Below, piece by piece: positions 26,967 to 64,000 of a stretch of 64,000 bases of DNA. A model generated the notes under the pieces. That model was given only the letters and a program-made list of their open reading frames with translations, was not told the origin of the DNA and ran no database searches. Origin of the DNA: Macrostomum lignano (Eukaryota); assembly GCA_002269645.1 (NCBI GenBank), contig NIVC01000042.1:62001-126000 (forward strand). Reading direction: 5' to 3'. Numbering within the stretch: position 1 is the first letter of the stretch; each line of letters opens with the position of its first letter. Made by a program: the position numbers and the translations under genes.

Positions 26967-27530
26967 GCTACCTCCTCTACTTCCTCTACCTCCTCTACCT
27001 CCTCTACCTCCTCTACCTCCTCTACTTCCTCTACCTCCGCTACCTCCTCTACCTCCTCTACCTCCTCTACTTCCTCTACTTCCTCTACCTCCTCTACCTC
27101 CTCTACCTCCTCTACCTCCTCTACCTCCTCTACCTCCTCTACCTCCTCTACCTCCTCTACCTCCTCTACCTCCTCTACCTCCTCTACCTCCTCTACCTCC
27201 TCTACCTCCTCTACCTCCTCTACCTCTGCTACCTCCTTTACCTCCGCTACCTACCGGACCTCCTCTACCTCCGCTACCTACCGGACCTCCTCTACCTCCG
27301 CTACCTTCTCTACCCTGTCTCTTCTACCTACCCTACCTCCTTTGCCTCCACTAGCTACCCTACATACGGCACCTACCCTACCTCTGGTACCTACCCTACC
27401 TCCTCTACCTACCCTTACCTCCAGTACCTACCCTTACCTCCGCTACCTACCCTTACCTCCAGTAACTACCCTACCTTCACTACCTACCCTACAAACGGTA
27501 CCTACCCTACTTCCGGTACCTACACTACTT
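26967..27530. repeat. 9-bp pyrimidine-rich repeat CCTCTACCT with degenerate tail
   Basis: Direct inspection. Confidence 0.92.
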
Positions 27531-28159
27531 CTTCAATGATAAACCGGCTTATTGTAATAAGACTGGGAGTATTTTTGCCTGACTCGAGCCGACCCCCCGA
27601 CCGGACGCGCCTGAGCAGAAGACATTCAGCTCAGCGCAGCGCTGAATCAGAAAAATCGGAAAATAGTGAATAACGCAATTGAGCCCCCCCCCCCAATATC
27701 CAATTTCTACTTGAATGAGTTCCACTTCACCCCAGCACTGTCAGATTTTATTAGAGTCAGCCTCCCGTTAGGTCGGCCTTTTAATGCACAACTCGACAGG
27801 ATCCATTGCTATGCTACGTTAATTGGCAGGCTATCAGGTGGGAGCGGGTCCTCCACCCACTGTGAGATCCCCGCCCTCCCTGGGGCCAGCCGGATATGAG
27901 ACTACAATGGATTGGGCCGGGGGTGGCAGCACTACAAAGGAGAATGAGAGAGGGAGAGAGGAGGAGAGCTGGACACGCGACACGAGATGCTGTGTTCCTG
28001 GTCTGTTGGCCTGTCCGTCTGTCTGCATGTCTTTACGAGCGTATAGGCCCAAGGCAATACTGGCTTATTAGTCTCACTCACTGGGCAGAGATGGAAGAGA
28101 GAGATGGATCAGTGGGACGGGAGATACGAGTAAGAGATGGAAATTAGAGAAAATAGAAA

Positions 28160-28921
28160 AGAGACAAGAGAGACAATAGAGACTCCAGACAGATATGAGA
28201 GAGACAAGACATACACCAGACAGACACGAGAGAGGCGGCACCGGAGAGACACGAGAGAAACACCAGACAAACACGAGAGAGACACCAGACAGACACAATA
28301 GAGACACCATAAAGACACGAGAGAGACACCAGACAGACACGAGAGAGACACCAGGCAGACACGAGAGAGACGCTAGACAGATATGAGAGAGACAAGAGAG
28401 ACACAAGACAGACACAAGAGAGACACCAGACAGACACAAGAGAGACACCAGACAGACACGAGAGAGACACCATAAAGACACGAGAGAGACACCAGACAGA
28501 CACGAGAGAGACACCATAAAGACACGAGAGAGACACCATAAAGACACGAGAGACACCAGGCAGACACGAGAGAGACACCAGGCAGACACGAGAGAGACAC
28601 CAGGCAGACACGAGAGAGACACCAGGCAGACACGAGAGAGACACCAGGCAGACACGAGAGAGACACCAGGCAGACACGAGAGAGACACCAGGCAGACATG
28701 AGAGAGACACCAGACAGACACAAGAGAGACACCAGACAGACACAAGAGAGACACCAGACAGACACGAGAGAGACACCATAAAGACACGAGAGAGACACCA
28801 GACAGACACGAGAGAGACACCATAAAGACACGAGAGAGACACCAGGCAGACACGAGAGAGACACCAGGCAGACACGAGAGAGACACCAGGCAGACACGAG
28901 AGAGACACCAGGCAGACACGA
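28160..28921. repeat. 22-bp minisatellite CACGAGAGAGACACCAG(G/A)CAGA
   Basis: Direct inspection. Confidence 0.93.
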
Positions 28922-29522
28922 GTTTAGTTGCTGCTTCAATTGGAAAAAGGACAGAATGAAAAAACGAATGGAATGGATGATTCCAGACAAGTCGCCTCCA
29001 CTTCGCATGGCAGTCCATCCTCGCCATTGCTGCTTGAAGTCTCTTCTAAAAGCAGAAGACAGTGTCACGCCTGAGTGTCCGCCCGCCACGAGTTCCTATT
29101 TGCCCAGAGCCACTGCCGCCCTTCCCCAGGGGCCCGGAACGGCCGCTGGTCAAGAGCACGTGTCTCGCCCTGCTCAATTTCACAACTCTTCCGAGAGCGT
29201 TGCTGCTCCTAGTAGGGAAGAGGAAAGCAGAAGAAAGAGGGCTGCTATTGATCCATAGGATAAGATCGATGATGATAGATTAGTTGACACCGACCTCTGC
29301 TCTCTGCGTTGGCCCTTTTAACCAGAGTTCAAGAAACACTTATGCTAATGACTGAACTGCAGCTGGGGATAAATATTTGGAGTTTGGATCGATTTGTGTT
29401 CTGCTAACTCAGCCCCCCCCCCCCCGCTGTGTCTGCTCCCCTCGATTGTGCTGTGTCCTGCTTTCTAATATTTGAGCATTCATGTTATTTTTGCTATTAA
29501 TAATTTATTAAGTTTCTCGTGT

Positions 29523-30330: not shown

Positions 30331-31404
30331 CAGGCAGCTAAATGTGTCAATTTTCACACAACTCGCCACTCAAAGTAGAATAAGTCCCCAGCTGCAGTTC
30401 ACAGTGACTATACCGGTAACTTCCACAGACTAAATCTAGGTGAGCACAGCACCCTGCACCTTATCCCAAATCATTCGAGCAGAAAGTCAAAAGACTCTGC
30501 TGGGTCTTACACGGGAAGACAGCACTTCTCCACTGTCAATGTTTGCCAAACTGCAGGCCTCAAATCCTATATTAGGGATCGGCCTGGTGTCCCGGCGACT
30601 CCAGCTCTTTATTTGTCCATCAACCCTCTAGAGCGCGGCATTCGAACCTTAGCGACAAAATTTTCAATAAAGAGAGCCGCTCGTTTTTGGCCTCCCAAAA
30701 TCCCCTCGGGTCAATAAATATTCCTCCCCTTCCTCGATCGTGTTTGCAGAACTGAGTCGCCATTAGGCTTCATTTTCCTGACCGGAGACTCCATATTCAA
30801 GCCTATGCGGGGATGGATGTTAAAAAACTGGGCTCAGGTTACCTACATGATTTTGAGGGGCGCAGACTTCGAATGCTGAGATTGCCCCAACCTCCCAATT
30901 TCTCCCATATATAAAAGAATCAGAAATCAAGACGGGTTGGGACAAGACAAGTCAGAAAGCGATTTTGAGTTCTACTTGACTTGAGCCAACAAGTTTCTTT
31001 CTAATGCTCATCTTTGTCCATCAGAAACCCGGGGGGGGGGGGGAGAGGGAGGGAGAGAGGGAGAGAGAATGTCAAGACAGCATCCTACTGTCCGTTCCTC
31101 CGTCATCCCTGACCCTGAGATAATTAACCTCGGACAGCCACCCCGTGCTCCTCTGGCTCCGTCCGGATAGATTATAACTAGATTAGGCTTAATCTGTCCA
31201 ACCCGGCCAGATATTGATTGGAAATTTGAGTCCAACTGTCCAGCAGCACTTATTAACTATTGAAGCGGCGCTGCGGATCCCTTGGTGCAAGGGGGGTGCT
31301 GGTGGGAGCAGGACGGAACTGATCGGGGGAGAAATTAATGAATATTAATATTTTCTGAGAAGATCTGGCCAATTTTAAAAAAATAGCTTTGTCAAATATT
31401 TCAC

Positions 31405-32160
31405 AGGCACACTAGCACAAGGACGCACAGGCACAAGGACACAGGCACAAGAACACAGGCACAAGAACACAGGCACAAGAACACAGGCACAAGAACACAG
31501 ACACAAGCACACAGACACAAGCACAGACACAAGCACACAGGCACAAGCACACAGGCACAAGCACACAGGCACAAGCACACAGACACAAGCACACAGACAC
31601 AAGCACACAGACACAAGCACACAGGCACAAGAACACAGACACAAGAACACAGGCACAAGAACACAGACACAAGCACACAGACACAAGCACAGACACAAGC
31701 ACACAGGCACAAGCACACAGGCACAAGCACACAGACACAAGCACACAGGCACAAGCACACAGGCACAAGCACACAGGCACAAGCACACAGACACAAGCAC
31801 ATAGACACAAGGACACAGACACAAGCACACAGGCACAAGCACACAGGCACAAGCACACAGACACAAGCACACAGGCACAAGCACACAGGCACAAGAACAC
31901 AGGCACAAGGACGCACAGGCACAAGCAACACAGGCACAAGGACGCACAGGCACAAGGACGCACAGGCACAAGCACACAGGCACAAGCACACAGACACAAG
32001 CACACAGGCACAAGCACACAGACACAAGCACACAGGCACAAGCACACAGGCACAAGCACACAGACACAAGCACACAGGCACAGCACACAGGCGCAAGCAC
32101 ACAGGCACAAGCACACAGGCACAAGCACACAGGCACAAGCACACAGACACAAGCACACAG
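31405..32160. repeat. 14-bp minisatellite ACACAG(G/A)CACAAGC
   Basis: Direct inspection. Confidence 0.95.
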
Positions 32161-32626
32161 GAATAAGCGCGCATCTTCGGTAGGGTCCAGTGGAAACGAG
32201 AGCAATAATATTTGTTCATGCATGACATCCGGAGTCACCCATTAAATCACAAACACTCAGAGCCTGTTAACACTGCAGTCAAATGAGCAGTTAAACCGAA
32301 TGACTGAGGATGTACAAGGTGACGAATAATTAAGTGCAAACCATGCAATCACTCAAAATTGGCCTCGTTCCGATGGCGAGCTGTTCGACCGAGAGACGTA
32401 GGCCAGTCCCGTTTGGTACTGTATTGGATTTGAAATGGAGACGGCAAACGTATTATATACGTATTCCCACTGACACCTGAGCACGCGCTAACACAGGGTG
32501 TACATCGGCCCTGACTGTCTCATCATCGTCCAGGCATGTACACTCTCTGTGCCTTGGGGTTGGCACGACTAGCCTCTTTCCCCCTCGCTTAACCCTTCCC
32601 GAGTACCCTTGCCCCTATCTTTCCCT

Positions 32627-35865: not shown

Positions 35866-38158
35866 ATGGCTGCCAATGCACAGAGAAAAAGGCGAATTGC
35901 TGTTCTTGGTAGCAAATCAGTAGGTAAGTAAAAGTTGTACTGAAATAGATTTTTTGCCAGTTTGTCTTTGATTTTGGTTTTTTAAATTTGTGTAAAAAAA
36001 TTGAAGTACCAAAATTAGCAATTATAACTTCAAATATATAGAAGCCTTTTTAATATATAAATTAGAATGGCTTGGTCATTGACATAGAATGATAAGGCAA
36101 GGGCCTAGCTAGACCTATCCCTATGCAGAATCTCCCAAATTTAAATTTGCCATCAAACTGTTTTAGCAAAAAACTGCAGCTTAGTTGACTAGTTGCAACT
36201 TATTGCAAATTATTTTACTTTAATAATTAGTTTAATCTTTTAGTTTTGTCTTTTACTTTTAGATTTTTATTTGCTTTTACTTTTCCTCCTTTTAAGGCCC
36301 CTACTTCATTGCCTTGCAGCACTTTTTTCCTTTTTGCCTTTTTCATATTCAGGAATCAATTTTGCAACTTACTTGGCCAATAGAAGATAGGTTTAGCCTT
36401 TTTATCTATAACTCAATTGGCTAATTAGTGTTGTTTATATATAGGTCTAAAATAATCTTGAATTCAATTGAATATAGCCAACCAATCAATAGTTAATCAA
36501 TAGAGGTTGGACAAGATTGAAATCTTTGGGTGGGATCAGGATTGGGAATAATTTTTTTCTTGGGATCTTGATCAGGATTGGGATTCAGGAATCAGGATTA
36601 GGTCTTTTTGTATATTATAGTTCATAGGTCAATATAAAGTTAAACAAAATTGAGCAAAAATGTCAAGATCATAAGTAAAACACAGCAAAATTGATGCAAA
36701 GTTTTGTAAACAACAAAATAATAATATAATGAGTACAGGTTAAAAAAATACATTCAAGTAATCACTAATTCTATAAATTTTTAATCAAAAGATGTGTTCC
36801 CAATTCTTGTGTTTTTTTAGGGTCAGGATCCTGGTCCTGTGGTCCGAATCCAATTTTCTTCCAACTAATCCATAAGTTTTACCCCATCTTCAATCATACA
36901 ATATGTATATTACATCAAAAATCTCTTTTGCTTTAGTCCCCTGGGACTTAAGTGCTCCTCTTGCATTGAAAATAAAAAATCTCAACTTTAGCCCCTACAA
37001 CTCCATTCATACAATAGACATGATGTCAAAAATCTCTATTGCTTCAGTCCCTAAAACTAGGGACTTAAGAGTAACCATCATAAAACCTTTGAAACTAGCA
37101 AGAGTCATTGATTTACTATTGTTCTAACCTCTTAAAAACCATTAAATTAAGGCTCTAATGATCTTTTAAGTCTCAGCTATGTAGCAGCAAATATTACTAG
37201 ATATAAAAAATACCTCCATACAAGCTATCTGTAACTTCCCATAGCCATATTCATAGCTATGGCAGAAACAAATATTAAAAATATACCTTAATGATTTATA
37301 GCTACTTTTGTCAGAATTCTTCACAACTTTGTATGTAGGGTCAAGTTTCAAGCCAGAGCGTAGTAATGTTAGTGATTAGTGATTAATGGGCCATGGTATC
37401 TCTCTCACACAGGAAAGAGCAGCCTGACTATGCGGTTCACACAGAACACTTTCTCAGAGATGTACGTTCCAACCATTGAGGACACGCTCAGCAAGGAGGT
37501 CACTTTCCGTGGCCAAAGATATGTGCTGGAAATCACAGACACTGCTGGTCAGGAGTCTGGGTCGCCAGCCTCATCCGCCCAGACTCTCAACGTCGACGGC
37601 TGGGTTCTGGTGTTCTCCACCGCCAACAGAAAGTCGTTTGAGTATCTGCGCACAGTGAGGAACTGCCTACTGGAGAGCACAGGCCACCGGACCCTGCCAA
37701 TGGTGCTCGTTGGCAACAAGGTGGACCTGGCAGCCAATGACAGGACGGTGGGCTCGGATGAGGTGACTCGACTGGCCCAGGAGTGGCAGTGCCCTGCTGT
37801 ACTCACCTCCGCGAAAACTAATCAGGTTTGTTGCTTCGTCAGATACCTGCTAAACTTTAACTTCTGTGTCTCTCGATTCCCGGTGCTTCAGCCAGCCCGC
37901 CGCCCTCCCACTTCCCGGCGCTTCAGCCAGCCCGCCACCCTCCCACTTTCCGGCGCTTCAGCCAGCCCGCCACCCTCCCACTTCCCGGCGCTTCAGCCCG
38001 CCACCCTCCCACTCTCCCATTTCTCGATGCTTCAGGCTATAATTGAAATTCGCACCGACGCATTGCAGAACGTTCAAGAAGTGTTTGACAAGTGCCTGTA
38101 CGAGGTGGAGAAGCTGAACGGCAACATTAAGCAAGAGCGCAACTGTTGCATATCGTAG
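35866..38158 (+). CDS. Rheb: Rheb-like small GTPase, 186 aa; exons 35866-35923, 37413-37825, 38069-38158
   Basis: RRIAVLGSKSVGKSSLT (G1), PTIE, DTAGQ, LVGNKVD, TSAK and CAAX CCIS*. Introns fall within the G of GKS and after NQ, positions I recall also occurring in vertebrate RHEB. Confidence 0.82.
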
Positions 38159-42900: not shown

Positions 42901-45900
42901 GAGCTCCCGCTCCTCGTACAGACGAATATTATCAACGCCAATCTGTGCGCAGAAGTCGCGAAACACGGTGTCCTCAACGCCGTTGAGTTTCTCTCTCTCG
43001 GCCTCGATCAGATTGTGAATCTGCTGCATTCGAATCTGCAGTTTGGCGGCTTCGCCATCGATCTTGTTCAGCTCGCCGCCCATGTCGGTCAAATCGGCCT
43101 CGTTCGACTGTTTCAGCTTTTGCTCCTGATTTAGTAGTTAATAAATAACAGGCAAAAAGCTGATAAGCTACTTTCAGTAGTCTGAATTTATAAGAAAATA
43201 AAAAAGTAAAAATACAATAGACTAAGTAAGTTTCTTACCTAAATATTTTGCTAATTGTAAGATTTACAATGGATTCCTAGATGTACTTTTAGAATAAAAA
43301 GAACAGAACTAAAAATCATGTTATTTAGGCAAAAGCAAACACAAAAATGCAAAATTAAACTTTGTTTTGAGCCGCAACAATACCTCAACAACTATTCAAT
43401 CAATGATAAACTGAAAAATGATTGATTTGATTCCTGTCTTTGAAAAACTTTCTTAGCAGACAAAATACTTACCTCTGCGTCCTATAAATATAATACGTTA
43501 AAAATAATAAGTAAGATATGGTAAGTAAGTATCTGCAATTACTTAAAAAGGAAAGTATTCGAAATAAAAACATATTCTCGACTGCAACTCCTACGCTTAT
43601 ATTTCTACAGCAGCCCAGAGCTGCTAGCCAATCACCGCAGAGTGAACTACAGCCCAGAGCTGCTAGCCAATCACCGCAGAGTGAACTACAGCCCAGAGCT
43701 GCTAGCCAATCACCGCAGAGTGAACTACAGCCCAAGGCTGCTAACCAATCACTGCAGAGTGAACTACAGCCCAGAGCTGCTAGCCAATCACCGCAGAGTG
43801 AACTACAGCCCAGAGCTGCTACCCAATCACGGCAGAGTGAACTACAGCTCATGGCTGCTAGCTAATCACAGCAGGGTGAACTGCAGCTCATGTCTGCTAG
43901 CCAATCACAGCAGGGTGAACTGCAGCTCATGGCTGCTAGCCAATCACAGCAGAGTGAACTGCAGCTCATGTCTGCTAGCCAATCACAGCAGAGTGAACTG
44001 CAGCTCAGAGCTGCTAGTTAATCACGGCAGTGAACTGCAGCTTATGGCTGCTACTCAATCACGGCAGAGTGAACTGCAGCTTATGGCTGCTACCCAATCA
44101 CGGCAGAGTGAACTGCAGCTTATGGCTGCTATCCAATCACGGCAGAGTGAACTGCAGCTTAGATTTCTCACACAGCTCATTTCCATTCACCGATCTCAAC
44201 TTGAGATTCTCAAGACTTGATTATCGATTTTAGGAAGAGACACGGCATGAAGAATAGTGTTGATGAGCTCAAGCAAGCGATTTCAGTCCAATCAAAATTA
44301 TTAAAAATCAATAGGCCGTTTCCAACAGCAACTCACGGTGGTGTCCCGATCCTTCTCTGTATACTTCAGCCGGGTCTCCAGGCCCTGAATAGACGACTGA
44401 ACATTCTTCAATTCGGCCTCCTTCCTTTTAATCTTCATCAAATCTTTGAGCTCGGCCTGCAGCTTCTCTTTCTTGTTCTTCAGATTGGCCACCTGTTTCT
44501 CGTCCCATCGTCTGGCCCTGGCGCGCAGCTCGCTGGCTCCGCCGCTGATGACTCCGCTCTTCTGGAACAGGGTGCCATCCAGGCTGACGGTCTTCTTTCT
44601 CCCACCAGTCTTGTAGGCCACGTAGCGAGCGTCCTCGACTGTTTCGCAGACCAGCGCGTTGCCGCAGGCGAATTGCAGCGCCTTCTTAATGGTCGGCGGA
44701 TCAAAGTGAATCACGTCGATCACCAGGTGGACATTCTCTGGCGATTTAATTCCGCGAAGCTTCTCGTCTATAGGAGCCACGTCCAGGTAGTCTAACGGCA
44801 GGAAGGTCTCGGGCTCGAGTCGCTGCTCCTTCATGTAGGTGATGCAGTCTTTGGCCGTGCTCTCGGAGTCGACCACGATCGCGTCCATGTACTTGCCGAG
44901 CACCTGTCAGGGCAGTGGTTTTATTGCGGTTGTTAATTAAGCTTAGAGTATAGTACTTAGCCTAGCAGGTTAAGCAGATTCGGTCACGGTTAGCACACAG
45001 CCGTTTAAGCTCTAAAGCTGTAGTAGAAATTCTAAGTGAGAAGTTATGGCCCTTGCAATCTTATAATTCATGCATCCCAACTGTACAATCCAGCTAATCC
45101 CAACACTGTACAATCCGGCTAATCCCAACACTGTACAATCCGGCTAATCCCAACACTGTACAATCCAGCGAATCCCAATACTGTACAATCCAGCATCCAG
45201 CTAATCCCAACACTGTACAATCCAGCTAATCTCAATACTGTACAATCCAGCTAATCCCAACACTGTACAATCCAGCTAATCTCAATACTGTACAATCCAG
45301 CTAATCCCAACACTGTACAATTCAGCTAATCCCAAAACTGTACAATCCAGCTAATCCCAACACTGTACAATCCAGCTAATCCCAACACTGTACAATCCAG
45401 CATCCAGCTAATCTCAATACTGTACAATCCAGCTAATCCCAATACTGTACAATCCAGCTAATCCCTATACTGTACAACCAGCTAATCCAATACTGTACAA
45501 TCCAGCTAATCCCTATACTGTACAATCCAGCTAATCCCTATACTGTACAATCCAGCATCCAGCTAATCCCAATACTGTAAAATTCAGCTAATCCCAATAC
45601 TGTACAATCCAGCTAATCCCAATACTGTACAATCCAGCTAATCCCTATACTGTACAATCCAGCTAATCCCAATACTGTACAATCCAGCTAATCCCAATAC
45701 TGTACAATCCAGCTAATCCCTACACTGTACAATCCAGCTAATCCCTATACTGTACAATCCAGCTAATCCCAATACTGTACAATCCAGCTAATCCCTATAC
45801 TGTACAATCCAGCTAATCCCTATACTGTACAATCCAGCATCCAGCTAATCCCAATACTGTAAAATTCAGCTAATCCCAATACTGTACAATCCAGCTAATC

Positions 45901-48900
45901 CCAATACTGTACAATCCAGCTAATCCCAATACTGTACAATCCAGCTAATCCCAATACTGTACAATCCAGCTAATCCCAATATTGAACAATACTGTACAAT
46001 CCAGCTAATTCCAATACTGCATAATCCAGCTAATCCCAATGCGACGAAATCCCATGCTCACCTTAGTAATAGCCACCTGATATTTCCGATGCGAAGGCTC
46101 GCACATTTCCAACAGCCGGCCAGACACGCTGGGAAACAGTCGCTTAAGATTTTCGATAAGTTCGCGCTTACGCTGAGCCCTGGAGCTTTCGGTTCGCTCA
46201 ACACTGGCATCGCCAAGCTGCCTGTCAATTTCGGCCAGCTCCTGTTGAAGCTTCTCCAGCCGTTCATTAGCCGTGTTGATCTCCTCAGTGAGGCGCTCGG
46301 CCAGCTGCCTGAGCTCGTGAATCTGCTGCCTAGAGGACGATATGTACTCTTCTAGTTTGGATAGGCGCTTCTGATTCTCGCTTAGCTCGGTCTCTTTGCG
46401 CTTGTAGGAGCTCACAATGTCGTTCTTGTGGCGAACCTGATAGTGCGAGAGATGCAGGAGCTTTACTTTGATTGTCTATAGCTAACTCTGAGAGCCACTC
46501 TAACCTGAACCTGTTTGAACCTGAACCTTCAGTGACAGCTGCTAAATCTATCAGGATCTATCAGACAGCTGCTAAATCTATCAGGATCTATCAGACAGCT
46601 GCTAAATCTATCAGGATCTATCAGACAGATGCTAAATCTATCAGGATCTATCAGACAGCTGCTAAATCTATCAGGATCTATCAGACAGCTGCTAAATCTA
46701 TCAGGATCTATCAGACAGATGCTAAATCTATCAGGATCTATGAGACAGCTGCTAAATCTATCAGGATCTATCAGACAGCTGCTAAATCTATCAGGATCTA
46801 TCAGACAGATGCTAAATCTATCAGGATCTATCAGACAGCTGCTAAATCTACCAGGATCTATCAGACAGCTGCTAAATCTATCAGGATCTATCAGACAGCT
46901 GCTAAATCTACCAGGATCTATCAGACAGCTGCTAAATCTATCAGGATCTATCAGACAGCTGCCAAACCCCTTAGACTCCTTCAGTCAGTGTCTGTTGGCA
47001 CTGCAAGCACGAACCATAGCATCGTAGCTGTCCTTGTCTTCCCTGTACTCTCTCTCGTGATCGTCCAGCCGAGCCTGAATGCCGGCAGTCTCAATGGCCA
47101 CCTGCTGTTTAAGCCGATTGTACTCTTGCACCTGAGAATCGGCCAGCTGCAGATCTTTGCCCTGGCTAACGTACTGCTGGCTCTGCCTCTGCTCCCAGTC
47201 GTCTCGCAGGCTTTGCACTTTACGCAATTCGGCTTCGAGATGGCTGGTCTCCTGCACGTGAGCAGTGTTGGCTAGGCGAGCGTTCTCCAGTGACTTCTTG
47301 CAGTCGTTGCACTTGTCCTGGGTTGCGTTTGATGGCGGGGTGGTGAAGCTAAAATTCAAAATCCTTGTCACGGAAATTCTCCATCTTGACCCCGAAATAA
47401 AGTTCCCACCCCATCACGAAAATTCCCCATCACACGGCATCACTGCACGGAAATTCCCCATCATGACGATTGACGAGATTCCATTGCCGGCACGGACATT
47501 CCCGGCCTCGATCCAGCAATTCCCTATCTCAATCCCAAAGCCACCCATTATGTCCCTAAAATGTCACATCCCTACCACAGAAAATCGCTTTTGTGATCCC
47601 TACCCGAAATTCCCCACCGCAAGCAAGATCATCAGCCTCAAGTAGTATCAAACCTGCAAATGCCGCATTCTCTCCTTGCAGCGTATGTGATCCGGTTTCT
47701 TTTTGTTAATCTTGAACTCGGCTTTCTTTATCTCCTGCTCCAGCTGGCCGGCTTCGCGCTGCAGTTTTGCCTGCTCCTTCTTCTTGGCTTTCATTTCTTC
47801 TTCGATTTCGGCTCGAGCTGCGTGCTCTTTCTGGAAATTTGAGTAAAGAAAACAAATTAGTTATGGTGCTGCAATCAGTGAGACTCAGTCCCCAATGGTG
47901 CTGCAATCAGTGAGACTCACTCCCCAATGTTGCTGCAATCAGTGAGACTCAGTCCCCAATGGTGCTGCACTGCAATCAGTGAGACTCAGTCCCCAATGGT
48001 GCTGCAATCAGTGAGACTCAGTCCCCAATGGTGCTGCACTGCAATCAGTGAGACTCAGTCCCCAATGGTGCTGCAATCAGTGAGACTCAGTCCCCAATAA
48101 TGCTGCAATCAGTGAGACTCACTCCCCAATAATGCTGCAATCAGTGAGACTCAGTCCCCAATAATGCTGCAATCAGTGAGGGTACTCAGTCCCCAATAAT
48201 GCTGCAATCAGTGAGACTCACTCCCCAATAATGCTGCAATCAGTGAGACTCACTCCCCAATAATGCTGCAATCAGTGAGACTCACTCCCCAATAATGCTG
48301 CAATCAGTGAGACTCACTCCCCAATAATGCTGCAATCAGTGAGACTCACTCCCCAACAGTCCCCAATATCAGAAGGCAAACAGAGTCGCACCTGCAAGTT
48401 CTTCTCCTTGCTCTCTAATTCGCCTTTCACTGTGCGAATCTCCTGCTCATTATAGTAGAGCTTGAACTGCATCAGGTCCATCTGCTTGGCGGAGTATTCC
48501 TGCTTCAATCGTTTGAATTTCTCCGCTTCCTCTTTCTCCATTTTGGCTTCCTTCCGCTCGGCAACCATGCCTTTCTTCTTGTTGTACGTAGTCTGCGTCT
48601 CCAGCTCGGCCTGCGGCATTTTATTGGAGTGGGGGCGAATTTCATGTCTTTGTTTAGCTTGTAAAACAATAAGATTTTACAAAATAGACTCATTACTGAT
48701 TGATTTAGTGTGAATAACCATCGGTTCAATAATTCAAAAGTTGCATCATTTATCAGGAATTCCTTTTATTACTGATTCCCCGTCGTTTCCTAACCCCTTG
48801 TTTCTTCTTACCCCTTCATTCCCAATTCCCCTCCATTTTTTATTCTCCTAACTTTATTCCCGATTCCCCCATTTTTTATCCCCCCTTCATCCCGGCGATT

Positions 48901-51900
48901 CCCCATTTTTTATCCCCCCTTCATCCCGGCGATTCCCCATTTTTTGTCCCCCCTTCATCCCGGCGATTCCCCATTTTTTATCCCCCCTTCATCCCGGCGA
49001 TTCCCCATTTTTTATCCCCCCCTTCATCCCGGCGATTCCCCATTTTTTATCCCTTCCTTCATCCCGGCGATTCCCCATTTTTTATCCCCCCTTCATCCCC
49101 GCGATTCCCCATTTTTTATCCCCCCTTCATCCCGGCGATTCCCCATTTTTTATCCCCCCTTCATCCCGGCGATTCCCCATTTTTTATCCCCCCTTCATCC
49201 CGGCGATTCCCCATTTTTTATCCCCTCTTCATCCCGGCGATTCCCCATTTTTTATCCCCCCTTCATCCCGGCGATTCCCCATTTTTTATCCCCCCCTTCA
49301 TCCCGGCGATTCCCCATTTTTTATCCCCCCTTCATCCCGGCGATTCCCCATTTTTTATCCCCCCTTCATCCCGGCGATTCCTCATTTTTTATCCCCCCCC
49401 CCTTCATCCCGGCGATTCCCCATTTTTTATCCCCTCTTCATCCCCGCGATTCCCCATTTTTTATCCCCTCTTCATCCCCGCGATTCCCCATTTTTTATCC
49501 CCCCTTCATCCCCGATTCCCTATTTTTTATCCCTCCTTCATCCCCGCGATTCCCCATTTTTATCCCTCCCAACTCCCGATTCCTTCATTTTATTAAGAAA
49601 AGCTTAGGTTACAAATTGCAAAAAGCACTTTCCGAAAGCTCACCTGCTCCATCTCGGCCTTGGCATTATCGTACTCCTCCTTCAGTTCGATACTTTTGCT
49701 TAACTCTTCGAGCATCTGGCAGCGCTCTTTGGGATTTTTCAGGGCGATAGCCTCGACCGCGCCCTGGAATACTAAGAAATTCTTGCCTTTCATAAAGATC
49801 TGGATTTTTTCCAACGCGGCGGAGTACTCTTCAGCGCGAACCGTCTGCGGAAAATAAGAAAAAAATGATGCAAAACACGTGTGCTGATGACGATTTTATC
49901 ACTGGCAGTATATGACTCTATAATCTTTAAAGAGCCCTTGTAAATGGGTCGTTGCTTACCCTCTCTTTGGGGTCTTTAAGAAGGTCGCTGCCCACCCCAC
50001 CACCCTCTCAGTCCTCAGCTTGGCCGCTGCTCACCCCACCACCCTCTCAGTCCTCAGCTTGGCCGCTGCTCACCCCACCACCCTCTCAGTCCTCAGCTTG
50101 GCCGCTGCTCACCCCACCACCCTCTCAGTCCTCAGCTTGGCCGCTGCCCACCCCACCACCCTCTCAGTCCTCAGCTTGGCCGCTGCTCACCCCACCACCC
50201 TCTCAGTCCTCAGCTTGGCCGCTGCTCACCCCACCACCCTCTCAGTCCTCAGCTTGGCCGCTGCTCACCCCACCACCCTCTCGGTGCTCAGCTTGGCCGC
50301 TGCTCACCCCAGCTTCAGCTTGGCCGCTGCTCACCCCAGCTTCAGCTTGGCGTTGGCCGCTGTTCACCCGTGCCTATCAATCCAGAGCTTAACATTTCTG
50401 ATGCTTCTCTTTACCCTTCATAGACCCTCACCGAATTGTTAATTTTGTACTCAGACGTGTTGCCGTGGATGTGCCTGGAGAATCGAGTCTCTTGCTTGTC
50501 CTCGGACTCGTACACGACGGCCACAAAAGCGGATTTGGCTACGGGACGTTCAACAACGGCGCCGTGGATTAGCTCGCTAAGCTTCTTCACGCGTAGGTGG
50601 CGAGTCTGGTCGCCGAGCACGAAGGAGAGAGCGTCCATGAGGTTGGACTTGCCTGCGTGTGCGAAATACACAGCAGAATTAGGTGCAGTTTTCATGGATT
50701 AGTCTATGGCTAAAGCTGGTGTTGGAGCTTAGAGTAGGATGTGAATGGGAAGACTGAGCAAAAAGACAATAATTGTGATTGAGTGATATCGGTAGCAGAA
50801 AAAATTGCAGCTCACTGTAGTTGTGACAAAGCAGATCACAGGAATGTATGAAAATATAACAATATAGTCATCAACCATCATATCATTAATCAATCCGTCA
50901 ACCTATACTAAATGTATAATACTTGTCTACCTGTCTAGGTCTGGGCAACAGACTACAGACTGAAATTATTGCAAAACATTGCAAATTGTTCAAGGATTGT
51001 ACCAATAAAATTTCTTTTGTCTACTTTAATCCTAATTCCAAAATGTACTAAATATAAGAAAAATGATTTTCTCCATTGTTTTCAATAAGAGGCTAGAAAA
51101 GGTCAATATCTTGATTGATTGATTTGTAATTCCAATTGAGATTAAGTTATAAGTTCTCTGTTTTCACTATATAAGCCTCAATATTGGCTATATACAAGAG
51201 AAAAGAAAATGCTAAATAGCTATATTCTGCCCTAGGCTGACTAGCAAACTGCATAGATAATTGCTATTTTTAGATTTCACTCAACTTAATTCCTTTACTC
51301 ACTTAACAGGCTAGGTCTAAGGTCCTAGGTTCAAGTATGCCTCCCAATAGACAATTAAAATTGAATTCATTTATTTATAGCTTATACCTTGACTAATTGG
51401 AGCATTTCTAATTAGGACCTAATTAGCATTAAGCAATATATACTTAATGAATTTTTTGCTATATTGCTTAAGTCAATAAATAAATTTGATTTATAAAAAA
51501 CTACTTTGAATAATATTATTCTTATCAGTATGGGATATTTTAATATAGCTATTTTTAGATTTATCTTTAAATAAACTAAAACATACTATAAATTAATCTA
51601 ATATTCCTTTTGCACCAAATATAACAATTTTTAAATAGGTTAATAGATCTATAAAAAGAAAAATAAAGCAAAAAATTATTGAAAAAAAATGTAATATGCA
51701 ATTCATATAAAAATACTATTATTAAAATAAATAATAATTAATTTTTTATTTGTTTTTTTGTTATAAGCAGTGATAAATTATACTTATTATTTTTGTAACT
51801 ACAAGAGTTGGTGTAATTCTTGTTTATACATTTTTAACTATTGTTTACTATTCTTTCTAAGCCAAACTTTCATATAGAGTTCTGTTTATAACCCTATTGG

Positions 51901-54900
51901 AATAAGTTTCAAAAATCTGCGGACGCACGACACGGGTGCCAAAATTGTACCCTCAAAAGCAGGACGCGACACCAAATTTTGTTGACTGGGGGGCAGCGAC
52001 GTGCAATGCAACACCAATGTCTGTTGACCAAATGACTGGGAGGGGAGGACGAGGATGCCACAGCAGCCACATTGCAATTGACAATTCTCATTCTGCTATT
52101 CACTCCCAACACCAAGACCATGGGGCGAGGGATGAAAGTATTCCTTTTAATTTTGCAGAAAAAGAAATGAAATCTGGGTTTTTTTTTCGCCAGAGATAAG
52201 GTGCGAAATCGCACCTTGTGCCAAATTTCAAGGTGCGATTTTAAGGCTCAGAGTGCAATTTCTCTTGAGTCTTGTTTAGAATGTGAGGGTTTCACGAGAG
52301 ATATTCAGACAGACATTCGAAACGATCGTCTGTAACTTTAAACAAAATTGACCCGCTTCAACCATCTTTTTGGCAAATACTTACGCAAGTGTTGGGCGTC
52401 GAATAAGCTTTAATTTATTAACTGAAGTAAAAATCCTTCTGACATACATTGATTTAAAAATTGCTTAGCAACACTAGCTCTGATTAGAAATCGCTTTACT
52501 GTTGACTAAAATTGTTTTGATCGTAGCAGCCTAAAAGCAGATACTGGATTTAAAAATGCTTCGATTTACTCTATACGCATGTCTCAGCTTTAAAATGACA
52601 CCTCAGGCGTCGCAAAAGACAGCTTTGATGCTGAGATATTCGACACTAAACATGCATTGCTTTGCGCAATCTCACATTTAGAAATTTCACTGATTTTTTG
52701 TCGATATTTGTGCAGTTGCCGTGTCCTTGTTTTTCATCAGAAACTTGTCAAATTCTAGTCATGTCCAGTTTAAACCTGGACTTCTCTTAAACTGTCTTAA
52801 GTATTTGATTTTTAATGATTCCTGCCTTTATATTGCATAGATTGTACCTGAGTCAGTGAGTCTGTGAGTGTACATTTGTACATATGGCAACCAATCATGA
52901 CTTTTTCACCGCTTTGCGGTTCAAATAAATATACGAGTGTACGAGAAACATGTTCCAACTGTTATTGAGAGAAATTGACGTCGCGTTTATTAACAGTCAG
53001 TGGCAATTAATATGAAGCAAATAGTTTATTGTTATGTTTTTACTTTTTTTGCGTGGCAATTCTGCTATCCAAATCGGAATGAGGTAAGCGGTGGGAATAA
53101 AATAAAAAGGAAGAATTTTTTCTACTGTTGTTGCAACCCAATAGCTATATGTACTTCAAACTTTTTAGATTGAACAGGCAATTTCTAATGTACTGCTAAG
53201 CTTTCCAATCCCTACGGACTACAGTAGCAGTTCTTAACTTTTTTTCTGTCTTGACTTCTAGACTCGGAATTCGGAACGACCTAAGGAGCCGCATGAAAAT
53301 ATTTAATTGGATAAAGATATTTTCTAAAAACAGCTCAAGTTGTGACACATCTTCTTCTCACCTCAGTCCATCAACTGCTGCTCCTTCTGAGACCAAAGTG
53401 ATCGTGAAAGTAAAACAGATCAGTTTAGATCCCATGGCCATGAATACAACCATTTCAATTGTGAACCTGCTTCGCTTACAAGTACGAGCACTAGCCTTCC
53501 ATTTGATGCCATTAGCTCACTTAACTCTGAAATAGTTCAAGGACGGTTCCAAATGTTGAGATCTGACATAGAAGCAGTCCAATTTGTGGAAATTTATCAA
53601 CTGGACTCCATGAATCACTCCAATGAAAGGCGGCGAATAGCTGCAGAATGCGTAAACAAGTTTAAGTGAGTCACAAAAACCCCATTTACTGTAACTACAT
53701 ACACTTGTACGTTAGCAAGGCTCCATGCGATGGTTAATAAATGGAGAAGTAGACAAGCATCTGAACAAATATTGAATAAAAATCAGTGAAGTTTCCGAAT
53801 GTGAGTTTGAGCAAAGCAATGTTTAGTGTCGAATATCTCAGCATCAAAACTGTCTTTTGCAATGCCTGAGGTGTCATTTTAAAGCTGAGACATGCGTATA
53901 GACATGACTAGAATTTGACAAGATTCTGATGAAAAACAAGGACATGGCAACTGCACAAATATCGACAAAAAATCAGTGAAATTTCTGAATGTGAGATTGC
54001 GCAAAGCAATGCATGTTTAGTGTCGAATATCTCAGCATCAAAGCTGTCTTTTGCGACGCCTGAGGTGTCATTTTAAAGCTGAGACATGCGTATAGAGTAA
54101 ATCGAAGCATTTTTAAATCCAGTATCTGCTTTTAGGCTGCTACGATCAAAACAATTTTAGTCAACAGTAAAGCGATTTCTAATCAGAGCTAGTGTTGCTA
54201 AGCAATTTTTAAATCAATGTATGTCAGAAGGATTTTTACTTCAGTTAATAAATTAAAGCTTATTCGACGCCCAACACTTGCGTAAGTATTTGCCAAAAAG
54301 ATGGTTGAAGCGGGTCAATTTTGTTTGAAGTTACAGACAATCATTTTGAATGTCTGTCTGAATGGGTCTCCCTAAAACACGCCCCGCACTGCCCTGCAGC
54401 GCTACACATTAAAACAAATTGGACTATAACTAAAGACACTTCAGAATGCGTTTTCTGTTAAGCTTCAAGTTTTTATTAAATTTAGTTTTTTTACTTTGAA
54501 ATATAAAATTCTGTGAACAATAAGTGATATTAATAATAATATTAATAAAATAATAATATTATAATTTAATAATGAAAACGAGAATATAAAAAATAATAAT
54601 ATTTAAAAAAATAAATAAGGATATTTATTCCATTACTATTTTAACTTTTCCTTGCAATCAAATACTGCATTGACAAAAAATGTTATAATGTGTAGCAGTT
54701 CGGGGCCCGGTGTGGGGCGTGTTTTAGGGAGCCTTTGTCTGAATATCTCTCGTGAAACCCTCACATTGCTCACATTTCAGACAACTGGGAATGTATATTT
54801 TAATATCTTACATAAGGCTATAGCTATAGGCTATATCGCCTATATGACTTAATAGGATTTAAAGAGTTATTTTGTTTCATATTTTAAGGCAGTGCATAAA

Positions 54901-56071
54901 AAATAGCTTAAGCATGGTTAAGCCTTTAAAGAAAAATGGTTATAAGACCGCACCTAAACCGCACCTACTTTTTTAATTTCAGGGTGCGATTTTAAAATTT
55001 AGGGTGCATACGCACACTCTGCGCACAAAAAAAAACCCTGAATGAAATTTAAAAGCAATAAACAGTAAAACAACAAAGGTACAACACTTAGAAAAACAGT
55101 GCACACATTGTAACTAACAAGTAACATTTCTAAAAATTATATTTGAAGTATTAGTTACTAACTTTACCATCAAAATAAAAAAGAACAATTCAAGAACTAG
55201 TTATTATCAAACATGTTTGAAACATTTAAGTACTAAGAAACAACTGTGAACATATTATAATGAAACACAGTTTGCAAGGTTTTGGCTATAGATCCAGGCC
55301 GCAACGCGACACATGACGACGCCAGCCGCCAAGTTGCTACACTGTCATGTCAGTCGCACAACGCGACGCATGATGACACCAGGTTTCCACAGTGTCGCAC
55401 AATGCGACACTAAGAGAATCCGAAAATGTGACGGACAGTCATCCACGTTTTGTCAACTTATTCCAATAGGGGTTTATAATTGATATTTTAGTCAGTATAA
55501 ATGTTGTCTTCCTAAAAATAGCCATAGCATAGCACCAACACAACACAACACAACATCCAATCACATACATGCCCAACATCTATCCAACCCATCTAAACCA
55601 AATGGGTGAAATGGTTGCTAGCCAAGGGCAAGGTAGGCGTAAGTTGCAAGATGCAAAAATGCAAAAAATAAAAAATTGGGGGAAGAAAGAAAGAAAAGAG
55701 AGGGAAAAGAGAGAGAGGGGAAAGAGGAGAGAGAAAGAGAGAAAGAAGACAAGAAGTCATATATAAAGTGAAAATTAAGTCACAATCAGCAGGAACTAAT
55801 TTGTAAATCTCGACAAAACTAAGTTACACTGGACGGGTGAAATTTTGAGGTTAGGCAGGTATGTCCAATCAGTAGGCCAAGTTATAACTAATCAGTAGAC
55901 AGTAGGCAAAAATAACTTGCATTTAATAATTCTTACTAACTACAACTACAAGTGCATACCTGATCCATTAGGACCAATAACAGATGTGAAGTCCTTGAAA
56001 GGGCCAATAATCTGAAAACCCTTATAGGATTTAAAGTTCTCGATTTCGATTCTTTGTAGACGTCCAACCAT
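39967..56071 (-). CDS. SMC1: Structural maintenance of chromosomes protein 1 (cohesin), 1246 aa; exons 56071-55960, 50652-50432, 49844-49644, 48610-48392, 47830-47654, 47317-47015, 46436-46062, 44903-44337, 43125-42898, 42713-42440, 42043-41709, 40920-40443, 40217-39967
   Basis: ENFKSY, Walker [23 protein letters not shown], hinge ([31 protein letters not shown]), signature LSGGEKT and Walker [10 protein letters not shown]. The 13 exons sum to 3741 nt in frame. Confidence 0.97.
41015..41620. repeat. 20-bp minisatellite AAGCGACCCTGGAT(TG/CC)TAAT, SMC1 intron 11
   Basis: Direct inspection. Confidence 0.9.
43608..44160. repeat. 39-bp minisatellite containing TAGCCAATCA, SMC1 intron 8
   Basis: Direct inspection. 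Confidence 0.92.
45078..46040. repeat. 25-bp minisatellite TACTGTACAATCCAGCTAATCCCAA, SMC1 intron 7
   Basis: Direct inspection. Confidence 0.95.
46532..46964. repeat. 30-bp minisatellite CAGCTGCTAAATCTATCAGGATCTATCAGA, SMC1 intron 6
   Basis: Direct inspection. Confidence 0.95.
47865..48357. repeat. 32-bp minisatellite TGCTGCAATCAGTGAGACTCA(G/C)TCCCCAAT(GG/AA), SMC1 intron 4
   Basis: Direct inspection. Confidence 0.95.
48860..49565. repeat. ~33-35-bp minisatellite CCCCCTTCATCCCGGCGATTCCCCATTTTTTAT, SMC1 intron 3
   Basis: Direct inspection. Confidence 0.95.
49985..50362. repeat. 39-bp minisatellite GCCGCTGCTCACCCCACCACCCTCTCAGTCCTCAGCTTG, SMC1 intron 2
   Basis: Direct inspection. Confidence 0.95.
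53079..53669 (+). pseudogene. Gene 5' fragment inside the fold-back element: ATG-AG | intron 53084-53261 | exon 53262-53665 with apparent frameshift near 53390 | donor GTGAGT
   Basis: Donor GTAAGC (53084) and acceptor Yn-CTAG (53261) join ATG 53079 in frame to the 53251-53535 ORF. A second frame is open for 92 codons from 53391 and ends just past donor GTGAGT at 53666. Confidence 0.5.
54364..54735. mobile_element. 372-bp MITE, Mutator-like (innermost insertion)
   Basis: TIR core CTCCCTAAAACACGCCCC; 9-bp TSD TGTCTGAAT (54355-54363, 54736-54744). The homologous left arm has a single copy of this 9-mer and no insertion. Confidence 0.8.
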
Positions 56072-57446: not shown

Positions 57447-60400
57447 TCAACAAGCTGTCAGTCTGCATGGACGCCAGGCACTGGCGGCGTCGCTAACGCA
57501 GCCGGTCAGCTTGGCGATCACCGCGCGTACATTGAGCAGCCGGTTAGCCAAGCGGGCGGCGGGGTACACCAGAGACATGTAGCTCAGCACCAGCACAAAA
57601 CAGGGCCAACCGTCAATGCTTTCTCGATCGGGCACGGTCACTTTCACCAGAAAGTCGACCAAACCGGTGAGCAGATTGGCAACTAGAAAGTACATCAGGC
57701 CGACTACGTCCACCTGACGCAGGTGGATTGGAGCCATGCGGAAGCCGCTGAGGTTTTGCGGCTCAGTCATGAGTAGCCTATAAGCAGCCGGCGAGGAAGT
57801 AGAGCTACTTTAATGTGCATTTAAGCCATTCGTACCTTACTTTAGACGAATGAGTATTTTTAAGCCACAACTCCCATCCCAGTTTTTGGATGGGACTCCT
57901 CAAATCTCACTCCGGTTCTTGGATGGGACTCCTTAAATCCCAACCCGGTTCTTGGGTGGGACTCCTTAAATCCCAACCCGGTTCTTGGGTGGGACTCCTT
58001 AAATCCCAACCCGGTTCTTGGGTGGGACTCCATAAATCTCACTCGATCCGGTTCTTGGATGGGACTCCTTAAATCTCACTCCGGTTCTTGTATGGGACTC
58101 CTCAAATCTCACTCTGGTTCTTGATGGGACTCCTTAAATCTCACTCCGGTTCTTGGATGGGACTCCTTAAATCTCACTCCGGTTCTTGGATGGGACTCCT
58201 CAAATCTCACTCCGGTTCCTGGATGGGACTCCTCAAATCTCACTCCGGTTCTTGGATGGGACTCCTCAAATCTCACTCGGTTCTTGATGGGACTCCTTAA
58301 ATATCACTCCTGTTCCTGGATGGGACTCCTTAAATCTCAATCCGGTTCTTGGATGGGACTCCTTAAATCTCACTCCGGTTCCTGGATGGGACTCCTCAAA
58401 TCTCACTCCGGTTCTGGTTCCTACTTGAGCAGTCATTGACTTGTACACGCCCTGACTTTCTCCTCGTCAGGCATCTGCATGCATGCGTTGGGGTGGGGGC
58501 GGCTGCTAGGCTAAAGAAAACAAAAATACACATGGGAAGCTCACTTCGCCGCCATCATCAGCCAGACGTTAATATGCGCGAATGCTGAAAACGCGGCAAT
58601 CCAAGCCGCATAGCTCGGATTCAGCAGGCGCCTGGACTCCGGCAGCAGCAGCTGAGGCAGGCAGCCCAGCAGCACGCGGTACAGCAGGCAGCCGGCCAGC
58701 AGGCTCGCCACACGGCCAAGCAGCCGACGCATCGCGACTGCTTGACGTTGGGGGTCGGCGCCGAGCTCCAATTGCTTGGCGCAGGCGCCGGTCCACCGGC
58801 CCAGCTGCAGGCCCACCAGGTACAGCGTGGGGATGCCGAGCATCGAGCAGATGCCCTCCCGATTGGCGCCGAACAGGCTGGCGCGATTGTACGGCTCCAG
58901 CTGGCCAGGTGCCAGGACGTATCCGGCAATGCCGGCTGAGGCCAGCAGAGTCTCGTGACCGGCGCCAGCCAGCAGCGCGGCCAGCAGCGGAGACATCCGA
59001 TCCGGCAGGATGTACAGCTCCAGCGCTGTGCCGCCCAGCTTGGCCACGGCCAGAGTGTAGAAAGCGTTCCAGTGCACGCCGTACTCGTGCCAGGACTCCT
59101 CGTACACGGTCTGGTCTAGCGCAATGTCTATGGCAACTGAGATGGACTTGACTAAGCCGCAGAATGCCAATAGAATGAACTGGGCGCCCGCTTTCTTCAT
59201 TGCGGCAGATCTAAGGCGAGGAAGAGCTGCGTCTGATGGTTCATAGGCTGGCTACACTTTTGAAATGCTGTACAATTTTTGCGTCTTGAAATGATAAAGT
59301 CAAGCGTCTGCAGTGCGGGGTATCATCAATGTTGAATGTCAGCAGTGTGTGATGTCAGTAGTGTGGAATGTCTGTAGTGTTGAATGTCAGTAGTGTGGAA
59401 TGTCAGTAGTGTGGAATGTCAGTAGTGTGGAATGTCAGTAGTGTGGAATGTCAGTAGTGTGGAATGTCAGCAGTGCGGCCTGAGAAACCAGTCTCAGTCT
59501 GCAAACGTACGTGCAATTACAATTTTAGCAGTGTGACGCACCTGTTGACCTCAATCTTCGCTCTAGTCGCCGTCGGGCCCAGCGATCCAATGCAGACTAC
59601 AAAGCAGCCCAAACCGACGTCCATGAGCGCCGTGCCGAAGCTGTCCGCTTTGCTGAAGTCGTTTCGCCAGCACGGCTGGTCCCTGGCAAAGATGCACACG
59701 GCGGTGGACAGGTACACTATCGAGCGGTACACCGTCTGGAAATCGTTGGTAGGCGGTCGGTTGGACTGTTCGACGCTAGAAGCTTGCGTTGAAGTTGAGG
59801 GAGGCGGCTTGTCCAGCATTCCACCGCGACTGCGCCGACGCCTGAGTCGTTTGTGCAGGCAGCAGGCGGCTGAGGCGAGGCAGCAGAAGGCGTCAAATTG
59901 GAGCACGAATCTTGTGTAGAGCGCATACGGATAGTCCAACACGCAGGCCAGGAAAGGCACCACCAGGATCAAGAACTGGACCGGGTGCGCCAAACTGGAA
60001 ATGGAGCAAAAATTTTAAGGCTTTTTCTCAACTTGGAACTAAGTACGACCGGCGACATTCCACCGTTCACGGGTACTAAGCAGGTTAAAGCTACATCCCT
60101 ACCGGTCTCTAAGCCATTCGAAGCTATATCCCTACCGGTCTCTAAGCCTTTCGAAGCTACATCCCTACCGGTCTCTAAGCCATTCGAAGCTACATCCCTA
60201 CCGGTCTCTAAGCCATTCGAAGCTTATATCCCTACCGGTCTCTAAGCCATTCGAAGCTATATCCCTACCGGTCTCTAAGCCTTTCGAAGCTACATCCCTA
60301 CCGGTCTCTAAGCCATTCGAAGCTACATCCCCACCGGTCTCAAAGCAATTCGAAGCTACATCCCCACCGGTCTCTAAGCCTTTCGAAGCTACATCCCTAC

Positions 60401-61335: not shown

Positions 61336-61876
61336 GCGAGAACAGCAAGGCTTAAAACTTGGCAAAGCAGATGTTGTCTACTCACCCAAGATCAATCAAG
61401 CGAGCCCCTAGCTCGTACTGTTGTTTGGCACAGTAAATTTGCTATGCATTAATTTTGTCAAGATATCTCAACTGAGCCAAAAAGCGTTCATATGCATGTA
61501 GTATCTACAAAAAATAGATAAAGCCAGGGCATTAAAAAAGAATTTTAGTAATGAAGCTCTTAAAGTCACCCGTACCCGATCCAGCTGAAGGTAATTGAAC
61601 TCGCTTCAAATCTGATAGCCGAAGCGAGTGATAAGCCAAGGTGGGCCGAGCAGCTTTAGTGTGCGCAATGAGTGGACGAAAATCAAAGCATAGACAGTCG
61701 CTTTTCGTAGCTCATTTCATTTGTACACGATTTCTTCTCCATTCTAATTATTTCTCAAGTTTGTGCTTACAAGTAAACTATATTTACGCTCATATTCAAC
61801 CTAATATGATGAGCTAACCATACTACTGGTTACGAGTAGAAACCTGAATGCGTCGAAATTCATGTTTATTACAGAG

Positions 61877-62414
<538 letters not shown>

Positions 62415-64000
62415 CTCGCTGCCTGCAGCTCCCACACCAGCTTTCGTGACCAAGCATGCAAGCGTTTGCCACTTCTGCTCCGAACAGAACAAATCGGCAC
62501 AGAATTCGACTGCGCATCTAAACTATAAAATCGCATGCCGAGCAGACACAGAGAACTGATAAAAGAGATACTGCAGCAGCAGCGGCAGCAGCAGCAGCAA
62601 GGAGAGACAGAGAGAGCAGCCAAGATAGCGACTGAAACAAAAAATTGGCCACTTCCTCTTCCGCTGCAATCTTCTAGTCAAACGGCAGCCGGCAATTATT
62701 TTATCTGGGCTATACGCTGTAATTAGCCTCTTCTTCCCTGCTTCCCCCTTTGCCCGCAGTCTCCTCGGTCCCCGGCTCTTTGCCTCGCTGCTCGACGGGC
62801 GGTCCTGGCGGCGGGAGGGATGAAGAGGATTCTGCTTGGATATATCGACATCTACTCGTTCTCAAACTTCTCAACCTCCCTCCCTCCCCGCTGCGCGAGC
62901 GATTTGTCAGACTCTTTGCCTTTTGCAGAGCTTCGAGCTTATCTAGCATGGAGACAGGGAGATAAACGACTCTTCAATATGTTCGCCTCCCGCATTCTTC
63001 GTGCGCACATGCAGCTTTCGTGCTCTGCTCTGCTCAAATTTTATGCATGCAACTGTCAAAAACTTCTTATATCTACTTGTTTGACAATGATCCGTGTCAA
63101 ATGGATGATCCATTAATTAGAAAAAAATAGAAGTTTTGCTAATTCCGAAAATTTGCATGCAACAAGTTGATGACCTAGGTGCATGGCATACAGGGGCCAT
63201 GGCATCTCAGAGTCATGTCAACGCCTCATGTCAACGGACGCTGTGCGGGAGCATGACTTGTGAGCTGCAGCATTTAAACATGTGCAGTCAAGTGAAACTC
63301 TCAGCATCTCCTACCCCTCATCTGTCCGTTTCCGCTATAATATCAGAGGCATTTTCATTTAAGATGGCTATACACAAAATCTTAATTGTGGGTTATCATT
63401 TTCGTGAGAAAATAAATGGTTTCTGATGACATTGTATAGCCTATAGAATTGAAAAACGAACAGGAGTGTTGAATATACTGCGCCACAGACGGTCAGTGGA
63501 GCAGAGAGTGAGGCTGTGCATATCTGCATTCTGCATGCTCTGCATCGCATATGGCTTCCAGCTGTGTGACAGTTCTGCCCATGTCTTTTGTCAAAGTGTT
63601 TTTAGCTTGCAAGAGCTGCTGCTGCACTCATAACTGTTAAAGAACTGCTACTACAGATCAACAGAGAGTTGAAAAAATAGCTGTCACAATACACTAGCTA
63701 TATACGAGTATATTACTGTATATAGTCGTACAATGGTATTCGAAATGTTGAAATCTCTTCACTTTACTGAGCGTGGGAGCATATACTCGTATATATTTGA
63801 GCACGGTCAGCACCCGCAGCTCTCATCATTTCATCGTTCTATCGCGTAAACGCATATCAAGTATAGTTATTCAACTAATGTATATGCATTACTTAATATA
63901 ATATTGCTTTTTCGAAGCCAATGGAGATATCAATGAGTTACTTTGGAAGGGAAAATTAAATTAACCCCAACTGCACCGGCGGGGAGGGGCAGCTGACTCC

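Follow-up and report, generated by a model that had tools for sequence, protein, structure and literature searches.

How was the block of sequence at 51884-55479 in the first intron of SMC1, a cohesin gene, assembled, and how many separate insertions does it record? The block is part of a 64,000-nucleotide stretch of Macrostomum lignano DNA (assembly GCA_002269645.1, contig NIVC01000042.1, positions 62,001 to 126,000 of the forward strand), referred to here as the window, and all positions are those of the window. A first-pass annotation had described it as a four-level nest of non-autonomous DNA transposons, consisting of an outer element (L1), a hAT-like element inside it (L2), a fold-back inside that (L3), and a miniature inverted-repeat transposable element (MITE, L4) in the right arm of the fold-back. 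Every coordinate and string given for these layers was present, exact to the base. A nest of non-autonomous DNA transposons was indeed found in SMC1 intron 1, with exact geometry of terminal inverted repeats (TIRs) and target site duplications (TSDs) and with no coding capacity. The defensible count, and the one borne by the evidence, is three insertions and one inverted duplication, not four levels. We consider it probable, at roughly 0.8, that at least three non-coding TIR transposons, belonging to three unrelated families, entered independently by cut-and-paste insertion to give the block, with L3 as an inverted duplication internal to L2.

Host intron and boundaries of the outer elements

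The window DNA is eukaryotic (animal) and rich in minisatellites, and SMC1 lies on its minus strand. The coding sequence of exon 1 runs from the ATG at 56071 to 55960 (minus strand), encodes a peptide that includes GPNGSG, and is directly followed by a GTATGC donor. The acceptor AG is located at 50654-50653 (CACGCAG) and exon 2 begins at 50652. Intron 1 (50653-55959, minus strand) is therefore a GT..AG intron of 5,307 nt in phase 1. In the spliced peptide of exons 1 and 2, the Pfam SMC_N match runs unbroken over the junction (E = 2.8e-29). The hinge exon of the gene (44301-44903) matches proteins bearing PF06470, the best of them at 67-68% identity. The splice sites and the continuous SMC_N match confirm the earlier placement of the block in intron 1. 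It lies entirely within this intron and contributes 3,588 nt, or about 68% of it.

The outer element, L1, extends from 51892 to 55471. Its TIR CCCTATTGGAATAAGTT is perfect (17/17), and the element is flanked by an exact 8-bp TSD, GTTTATAA, at 51884-51891 and 55472-55479; the flanks are identical at this length only. The left part (51892-52165, 274 bp) opens with the TIR, and its subterminal region is GC-rich and contains CGACAC/GCGACA motifs; the right part (55049-55471, 423 bp) carries the TIR at its end. Without its inserts, L1 measures 274 + 8 + 423 = 705 bp.

L2 extends from 52174 to 55040 and is flanked by an exact 8-bp TSD, AATGAAAT, at 52166-52173, in L1 sequence, and at 55041-55048. 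No other length gives identical flanks, a trivial 3-bp AAT coincidence being the lone exception. The ends CTGGGTTTTTTTTT and CAGGGTTTTTTTTT pair at 13 of 14 positions, or over about 22 nt with two gaps when a gapped alignment is used, and the tips read CTGGGT9 on the left and CAGGGT9 on the right. The left end of L2 (52174-52279) is 106 bp long and the right end (54768-55040, closing ...A9CCCTG) 273 bp, so that the element without its insides comprises 379 bp. Each subterminal zone has three copies of the motif GGTGCG, within about 60-90 nt of the tips and in mixed orientation: at 52200(+), 52210(-) and 52232(+) on the left, and as GGTGCG/CGCACC at 54949, 54960 and 54983 on the right. These two zones of about 90 nt each hold 6 of the 18 GGTGCG sites of the whole window. 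The left-end sites at 52200(+) and 52210(-) form a palindromic pair, GGTGCGAAATCGCACC.

Elements of the hAT superfamily have an 8-bp TSD and a TIR of 5-27 bp (PMC2874221), and L2 agrees with both. In the hAT element Hermes, the left end contains quasi-palindromic repeats, STR1/STR2, which are bound by BED domains, and the two ends are asymmetric (PMC10368747). The GGTGCG repeats of L2 are likewise short, subterminal and differently arranged at the two ends, in line with the earlier description of L2 as hAT-like. The Repbase rule assigns an element by aligning positions 1-11 of its termini, with 1 mismatch allowed, to a catalogued element of equal TSD length (PMC4455052). We infer the hAT affinity of L2 from its TSD, TIR and subterminal repeats rather than from an alignment to catalogued hAT families. 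The two subterminal regions are also joined by a 34-nt repeat that is direct, not inverted (52224-52257 and 54975-55008, 82% identical), and includes GGTGCGA.

A window-wide scan for exact 8- or 9-bp TSDs adjoining a 12-nt TIR with at most 1 mismatch returned L1, L2 and, within the arms of L3, two palindromes of a trivial kind. The scan misses L4 because the first 4 nt of this element are unpaired. In 100 locally (block) shuffled windows, the mean number of scan matches was 0.01. All TIR strings occur in the window solely at the ends of their own layers. The exact TSDs noted earlier for the outer, hAT-like and MITE layers are upheld at 8, 8 and 9 bp, and the sizes of about 0.7 kb and 0.4 kb proposed for the parent elements agree with those of L1 and L2.

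The fold-back and the MITE in its right arm

L3 (52280-54767; 2,107 bp without L4) is a genuine fold-back. The left arm occupies 52280-52765 and is followed by a unique centre of 991 bp (52766-53756), which matches no protein family and resembles nothing else in the window. The right arm is interrupted by L4. Its inner 463 bp (53901-54363) are 98.5% complementary to 52303-52765, and comparison of the arms places its outer 23 bp at 54745-54767. After deletion of L4 and one copy of its TSD, each arm has 486 nt, and the two agree at 479 of 486 positions (98.6%), the differences being 7 substitutions without any indel. Identity is complete over the outermost 32 nt. Next to the centre, a partial tandem duplicate (53757-53902) of the right-arm segment 53947-54096, roughly 150 bp long, is present on the right side only, at 86-96% identity.

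L4 (54364-54735) is 372 bp long, has a GC content of 29%, and is flanked by an exact 9-bp TSD, TGTCTGAAT, at 54355-54363, in L3 arm sequence, and at 54736-54744. No other length gives identical flanks. The TIR core CTCCCTAAAACACGCCCC pairs at 18 of 18 positions, and with 82% pairing the TIR reaches about 51 nt; within the window, this 18-mer is found only at the two ends of L4 (0.03 expected). As a single strand, L4 folds as a hairpin (z = -8.9). L4 is a classic MITE.

In the left arm of L3 lies the paralogous empty site of L4. This arm contains the target once, as ATTCAGACA at 52303-52311, which is the reverse complement of TGTCTGAAT, and the flanks are unbroken, reading ...GAATGTCTGTCTGAAT directly followed by ATCTC on the reverse strand. 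This empty site is the strongest evidence for the insertion of L4. The uninterrupted target, together with the equal length of the arms without L4 and a single TSD copy, bears out the earlier claim that the MITE entered after the arms of L3 existed. This is the only firm ordering in the nest.

The outer boundaries of L3 are of a different kind. The flanks of L3 are identical at no length from 2 to 10 bp, and inverted similarity does not continue beyond 52280 and 54767, where the score of the flank alignment equals the shuffle mean; the repeat ends abruptly. Of the features expected of a fold-back or long-TIR element, L3 has the long inverted arms and lacks a TSD at the arm tips. Since no TSD of 2-10 bp was found, L3 is not demonstrated as an insertion. 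Loss of a TSD by point mutation is not credible next to arm tips that remain identical over 32 nt. More likely, and more economically than by a separate insertion, L3 is a cargo or an internal inverted duplication of L2. The first-pass annotation had itself allowed that the third level might be internal structure of the hAT element, and with no TSD around L3 we judge this to be the better reading.

Two further observations concern the L3 arms. At the right junction of L3 and L2 (54760-54776), the 8-mer CTCACATT occurs twice in tandem with one G between the copies, the first copy being the last 8 nt of the L3 arm and the second the L2 flank at 54769-54776. This arrangement may be a footprint of the joining of an inverted duplication. 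Separately, 4 of the 7 substitutions between the arms cluster at arm positions 39-59 (52318-52338 versus 54316-54336), within about 30 nt of the point of L4 insertion.

Assembly of the nest and alternative explanations

The nine open reading frames (ORFs) of the nest, joined by X spacers, gave no match at E <= 0.01 among 5.8 billion proteins, and a six-frame Pfam scan of the L3 centre returned nothing credible. The longest stop-free frame of the centre (53391-53666, 92 codons) had one marginal and patchy HMMER match (E = 5e-4) among 1.84 billion representatives. No layer encodes a protein or a transposase, and with no coding capacity all layers are non-autonomous. For the whole window, neither an Rfam scan nor a tRNA scan gave any match, which argues against an origin of any layer from a short interspersed element or from a tRNA.

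The TIRs of L1, L2 and L4 are mutually unrelated and their TSDs are 8, 8 and 9 bp long. This points to three transposase specificities, where at least two types had been proposed before. Because none of the layers encodes a transposase, they would have been moved in trans. By established DDE cut-and-paste transposition, transposases encoded elsewhere would bind the TIRs and subterminal repeats and excise the element, its 3' ends would be joined across target cuts staggered by 8 or 9 bp, and repair of the gaps would create the TSD. L1, a 705-bp element with CCC...GGG tips, would have landed in AT-rich SMC1 intron 1 and duplicated 8 bp. The hAT-like L2, with ends of 106 and 273 bp, would have landed within L1, again duplicating 8 bp. 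L2 would have borne L3, the 2.1-kb inverted duplication with 486-bp arms and a centre of about 1 kb, as internal cargo or as the product of a rearrangement. The 372-bp L4 later entered the right L3 arm, where 9 bp were duplicated. The block appears to have no function for the host gene.

How far the order of the layers reflects events at this locus depends on whether parts of the nest travelled together. A composite, for example L2 with L3 and L4, or L1 with its contents, may have been built elsewhere and moved here as a unit, a possibility that we regard as somewhat unlikely. Each enclosing layer has intact TIRs and an exact TSD and would still be mobilisable when loaded, and the sequence gives no order of outer relative to inner events. 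No observation opposes it directly; a large cargo in a small element probably reduces mobility, and here 3.6 kb would be carried by an element of 705 bp; a second copy of the composite was not seen within the 64-kb window. Movement as a unit is compatible with three insertions and an inverted duplication and does not exclude them. It does bear on the recent serial insertion at the SMC1 locus that had been proposed: because a composite can move as a unit, the events here may have followed another order than the nesting suggests.

Two further alternatives were considered. In a true four-level nest, L3 would be a fold-back or long-TIR transposon in its own right that had entered a 379-bp L2, and we consider this unlikely. 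The sharp bounds of the arms, their length of 486 bp and their similarity, complete at the tips, would fit such an element, and with L3 taken out L2 is left at a MITE-like size. The flanks speak against it by differing at every TSD length from 2 to 10 bp, since a TSD would hardly have gathered eight or nine point changes next to arms so similar. The flanks also differ from AAA|TTT, the target of the TSD-less Spy group, and the arms are not made of the short tandem repeats that form the arms of Drosophila FB elements. The four-level count of the earlier description is accordingly not supported. It is hardly credible that the observations come from fortuitous similarity or from a misassembly, for example a chimeric long read whose palindrome would have created L3. 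Artificial palindromes are occasionally present in long-read assemblies; three exact TSDs adjoining TIRs, against an expectation of 0.01, stand opposed to any such explanation, and a palindrome arising at the level of a read does not fit arms with 7 differing sites, a unique centre of 991 bp between them and L4 on one side only.

Several points weigh against three insertions and an L2-internal duplication as we propose them. L3 could be a separate mobile element that produces no TSD, as reported for the Spy group (PMC4455052). The left tip of L2 is CTGGG instead of the canonical CAGGG seen on the right, the outermost 4 nt of L4 are unpaired, and the termini of L1 match none of the superfamilies that could be checked. 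In the window, neither blastn of eight nest pieces nor TIR searches with up to 3 mismatches turned up a further copy of any layer, the sole extra matches being AT-rich low-complexity sequence at 6742-6790. Nor was one found in public collections that do not hold the source species, where exact-match scans gave chance or unrelated matches. The status of the layers as repeat families is thus drawn from their structure alone.

The matches returned by these exact-match scans were considered individually and rejected. The L1 TIR 17-mer had 48 matches in prokaryotic genomes, all in unrelated bacterial metagenome-assembled genomes, and these were taken as chance, their number being about that estimated for a random 17-mer in 596 Gb. 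The viral scans gave 0, 2 and 0 matches, the two matches being lone 17-mers and judged to be chance. The L4 TIR 18-mer matched 23 metagenome loci, mostly from few samples, which belong to an unrelated high-copy repeat with the 18-mer in its interior: it reads ...GGCGTGGCTGAC-CTCCCTAAAACACGCCCC-TCCCCATATGTGTTAC..., is conserved on both sides, and has no similarity to L4 past the 18 nt. These loci lie mostly on contigs Ga0049107, Ga0049108, Ga0209786 and Ga0209678, and the repeat is that of some other organism. A literature search by terminal sequence yielded primer coincidences only, and when a neighbouring ORF was looked up as an exact protein, no other assembly of the locus came up.

We also considered a more far-reaching reading, namely that L1 represents an uncatalogued lineage of TIR transposons that joins piggyBac-like CCC...GGG tips to an 8-bp TSD of the hAT-like pattern nTnnnnAn, and that, separately, the L3 hairpin in the SMC1 pre-mRNA is an intronic source of double-stranded RNA or small RNA. 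We regard this reading as quite improbable.

Genomic surroundings and comparison with known transposons

Fragments of other genes in the window include a GDA1/CD39 nucleoside phosphatase at 754-1300(+), a ZIP zinc transporter at 6911-8032(-), a Ras-family GTPase at 37379-38158(+), and GWT1 (PIG-W) at 58541-59200(-). Minisatellite arrays are unusually dense. They occur in SMC1 introns (47867-50351) and in many other stretches, for example 1300-4000, 10760-13186, 13974-14799, 20313-21135, 26915-29089, 31375-32238 and 61801-62623, with units such as 32 bp x15, 34 bp x20.6 and 39 bp x8.4, and they yield long spurious ORFs in all frames. A long trinucleotide microsatellite lies at about 9630-10000; the stretch read (9643-9720) consists of (TAC)n, preceded by a short (CTG)n run, and repeat ORFs suggest that the microsatellite continues to about 10000.

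From the block it follows that no fewer than three different DNA-transposase activities are, or were until recently, present in the genome, and that transposons account for about two thirds of SMC1 intron 1. Its layers are exemplar copies with exact ends that can be used for a repeat library, and the filled and the empty L4 site, both within one locus, prove insertion in a neat, textbook manner. The 486-bp, near-perfect L3 arms form a long hairpin in the intron that might affect RNA processing. Past annotation, the block has little significance.

The tips of hAT elements are of the YARNG/CAG type, and the L1 tip CCCTA does not fit YARNG, while the TSD of L1, GTTTATAA, does fit the hAT target pattern nTnnnnAn. 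L1 opens with CCC and closes with GGG, and this is the tip signature reported for piggyBac/IS1380 (5'-CC..GG-3'; PMC10045372). The piggyBac TSD is 4 bp long (PMC10045372) and has the sequence TTAA (PMC2874221). In contrast, the TSD of L1 has 8 bp and TTAA adjoins neither of its tips, which rules out piggyBac for L1.

L2 resembles non-autonomous hAT elements (Ds-like derivatives and hAT MITEs) in its 8-bp TSD, its 14-nt TIR and its CAGGG right tip, and in having several short subterminal repeats in both orientations with a different layout at each end. The palindromic repeat pair near its left tip recalls STR1/STR2 of Hermes. Unlike the autonomous models Hermes, Ac and Tol2, L2 has no transposase, and it departs from hAT elements in its CTGGG left tip and in the 2.1-kb internal inverted duplication that it carries. 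Its TSD fits the target preference nTnnnnAn by half only.

L4 is similar to MITEs with 9-bp TSDs, which are associated with MuDR/Mutator, Merlin or AcademH, in its length of 372 bp, AT-richness, lack of coding sequence, TIR of about 50 nt, exact 9-bp TSD and strong hairpin fold. TSDs of 4-10 bp are known for MuDR and of 9-10 bp for AcademH (PMC10045372), and of 8-9 bp for Merlin (PMC10045372, PMC8101967). The 9-bp TSD of L4 fits all three ranges alike, so that TSD length alone cannot pick the superfamily.

As a whole, the block is like the nested transposon clusters of plant and animal introns and intergenic DNA in that elements with TSDs of their own are stacked, the younger within the older. 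It differs from them in that every demonstrable layer is a non-autonomous class II element and that the intron is one of an essential cohesin gene. Nested non-autonomous DNA transposons are commonplace in introns, and the block is ordinary genome clutter of this sort; its novelty is limited to families of known kinds that are probably uncatalogued.

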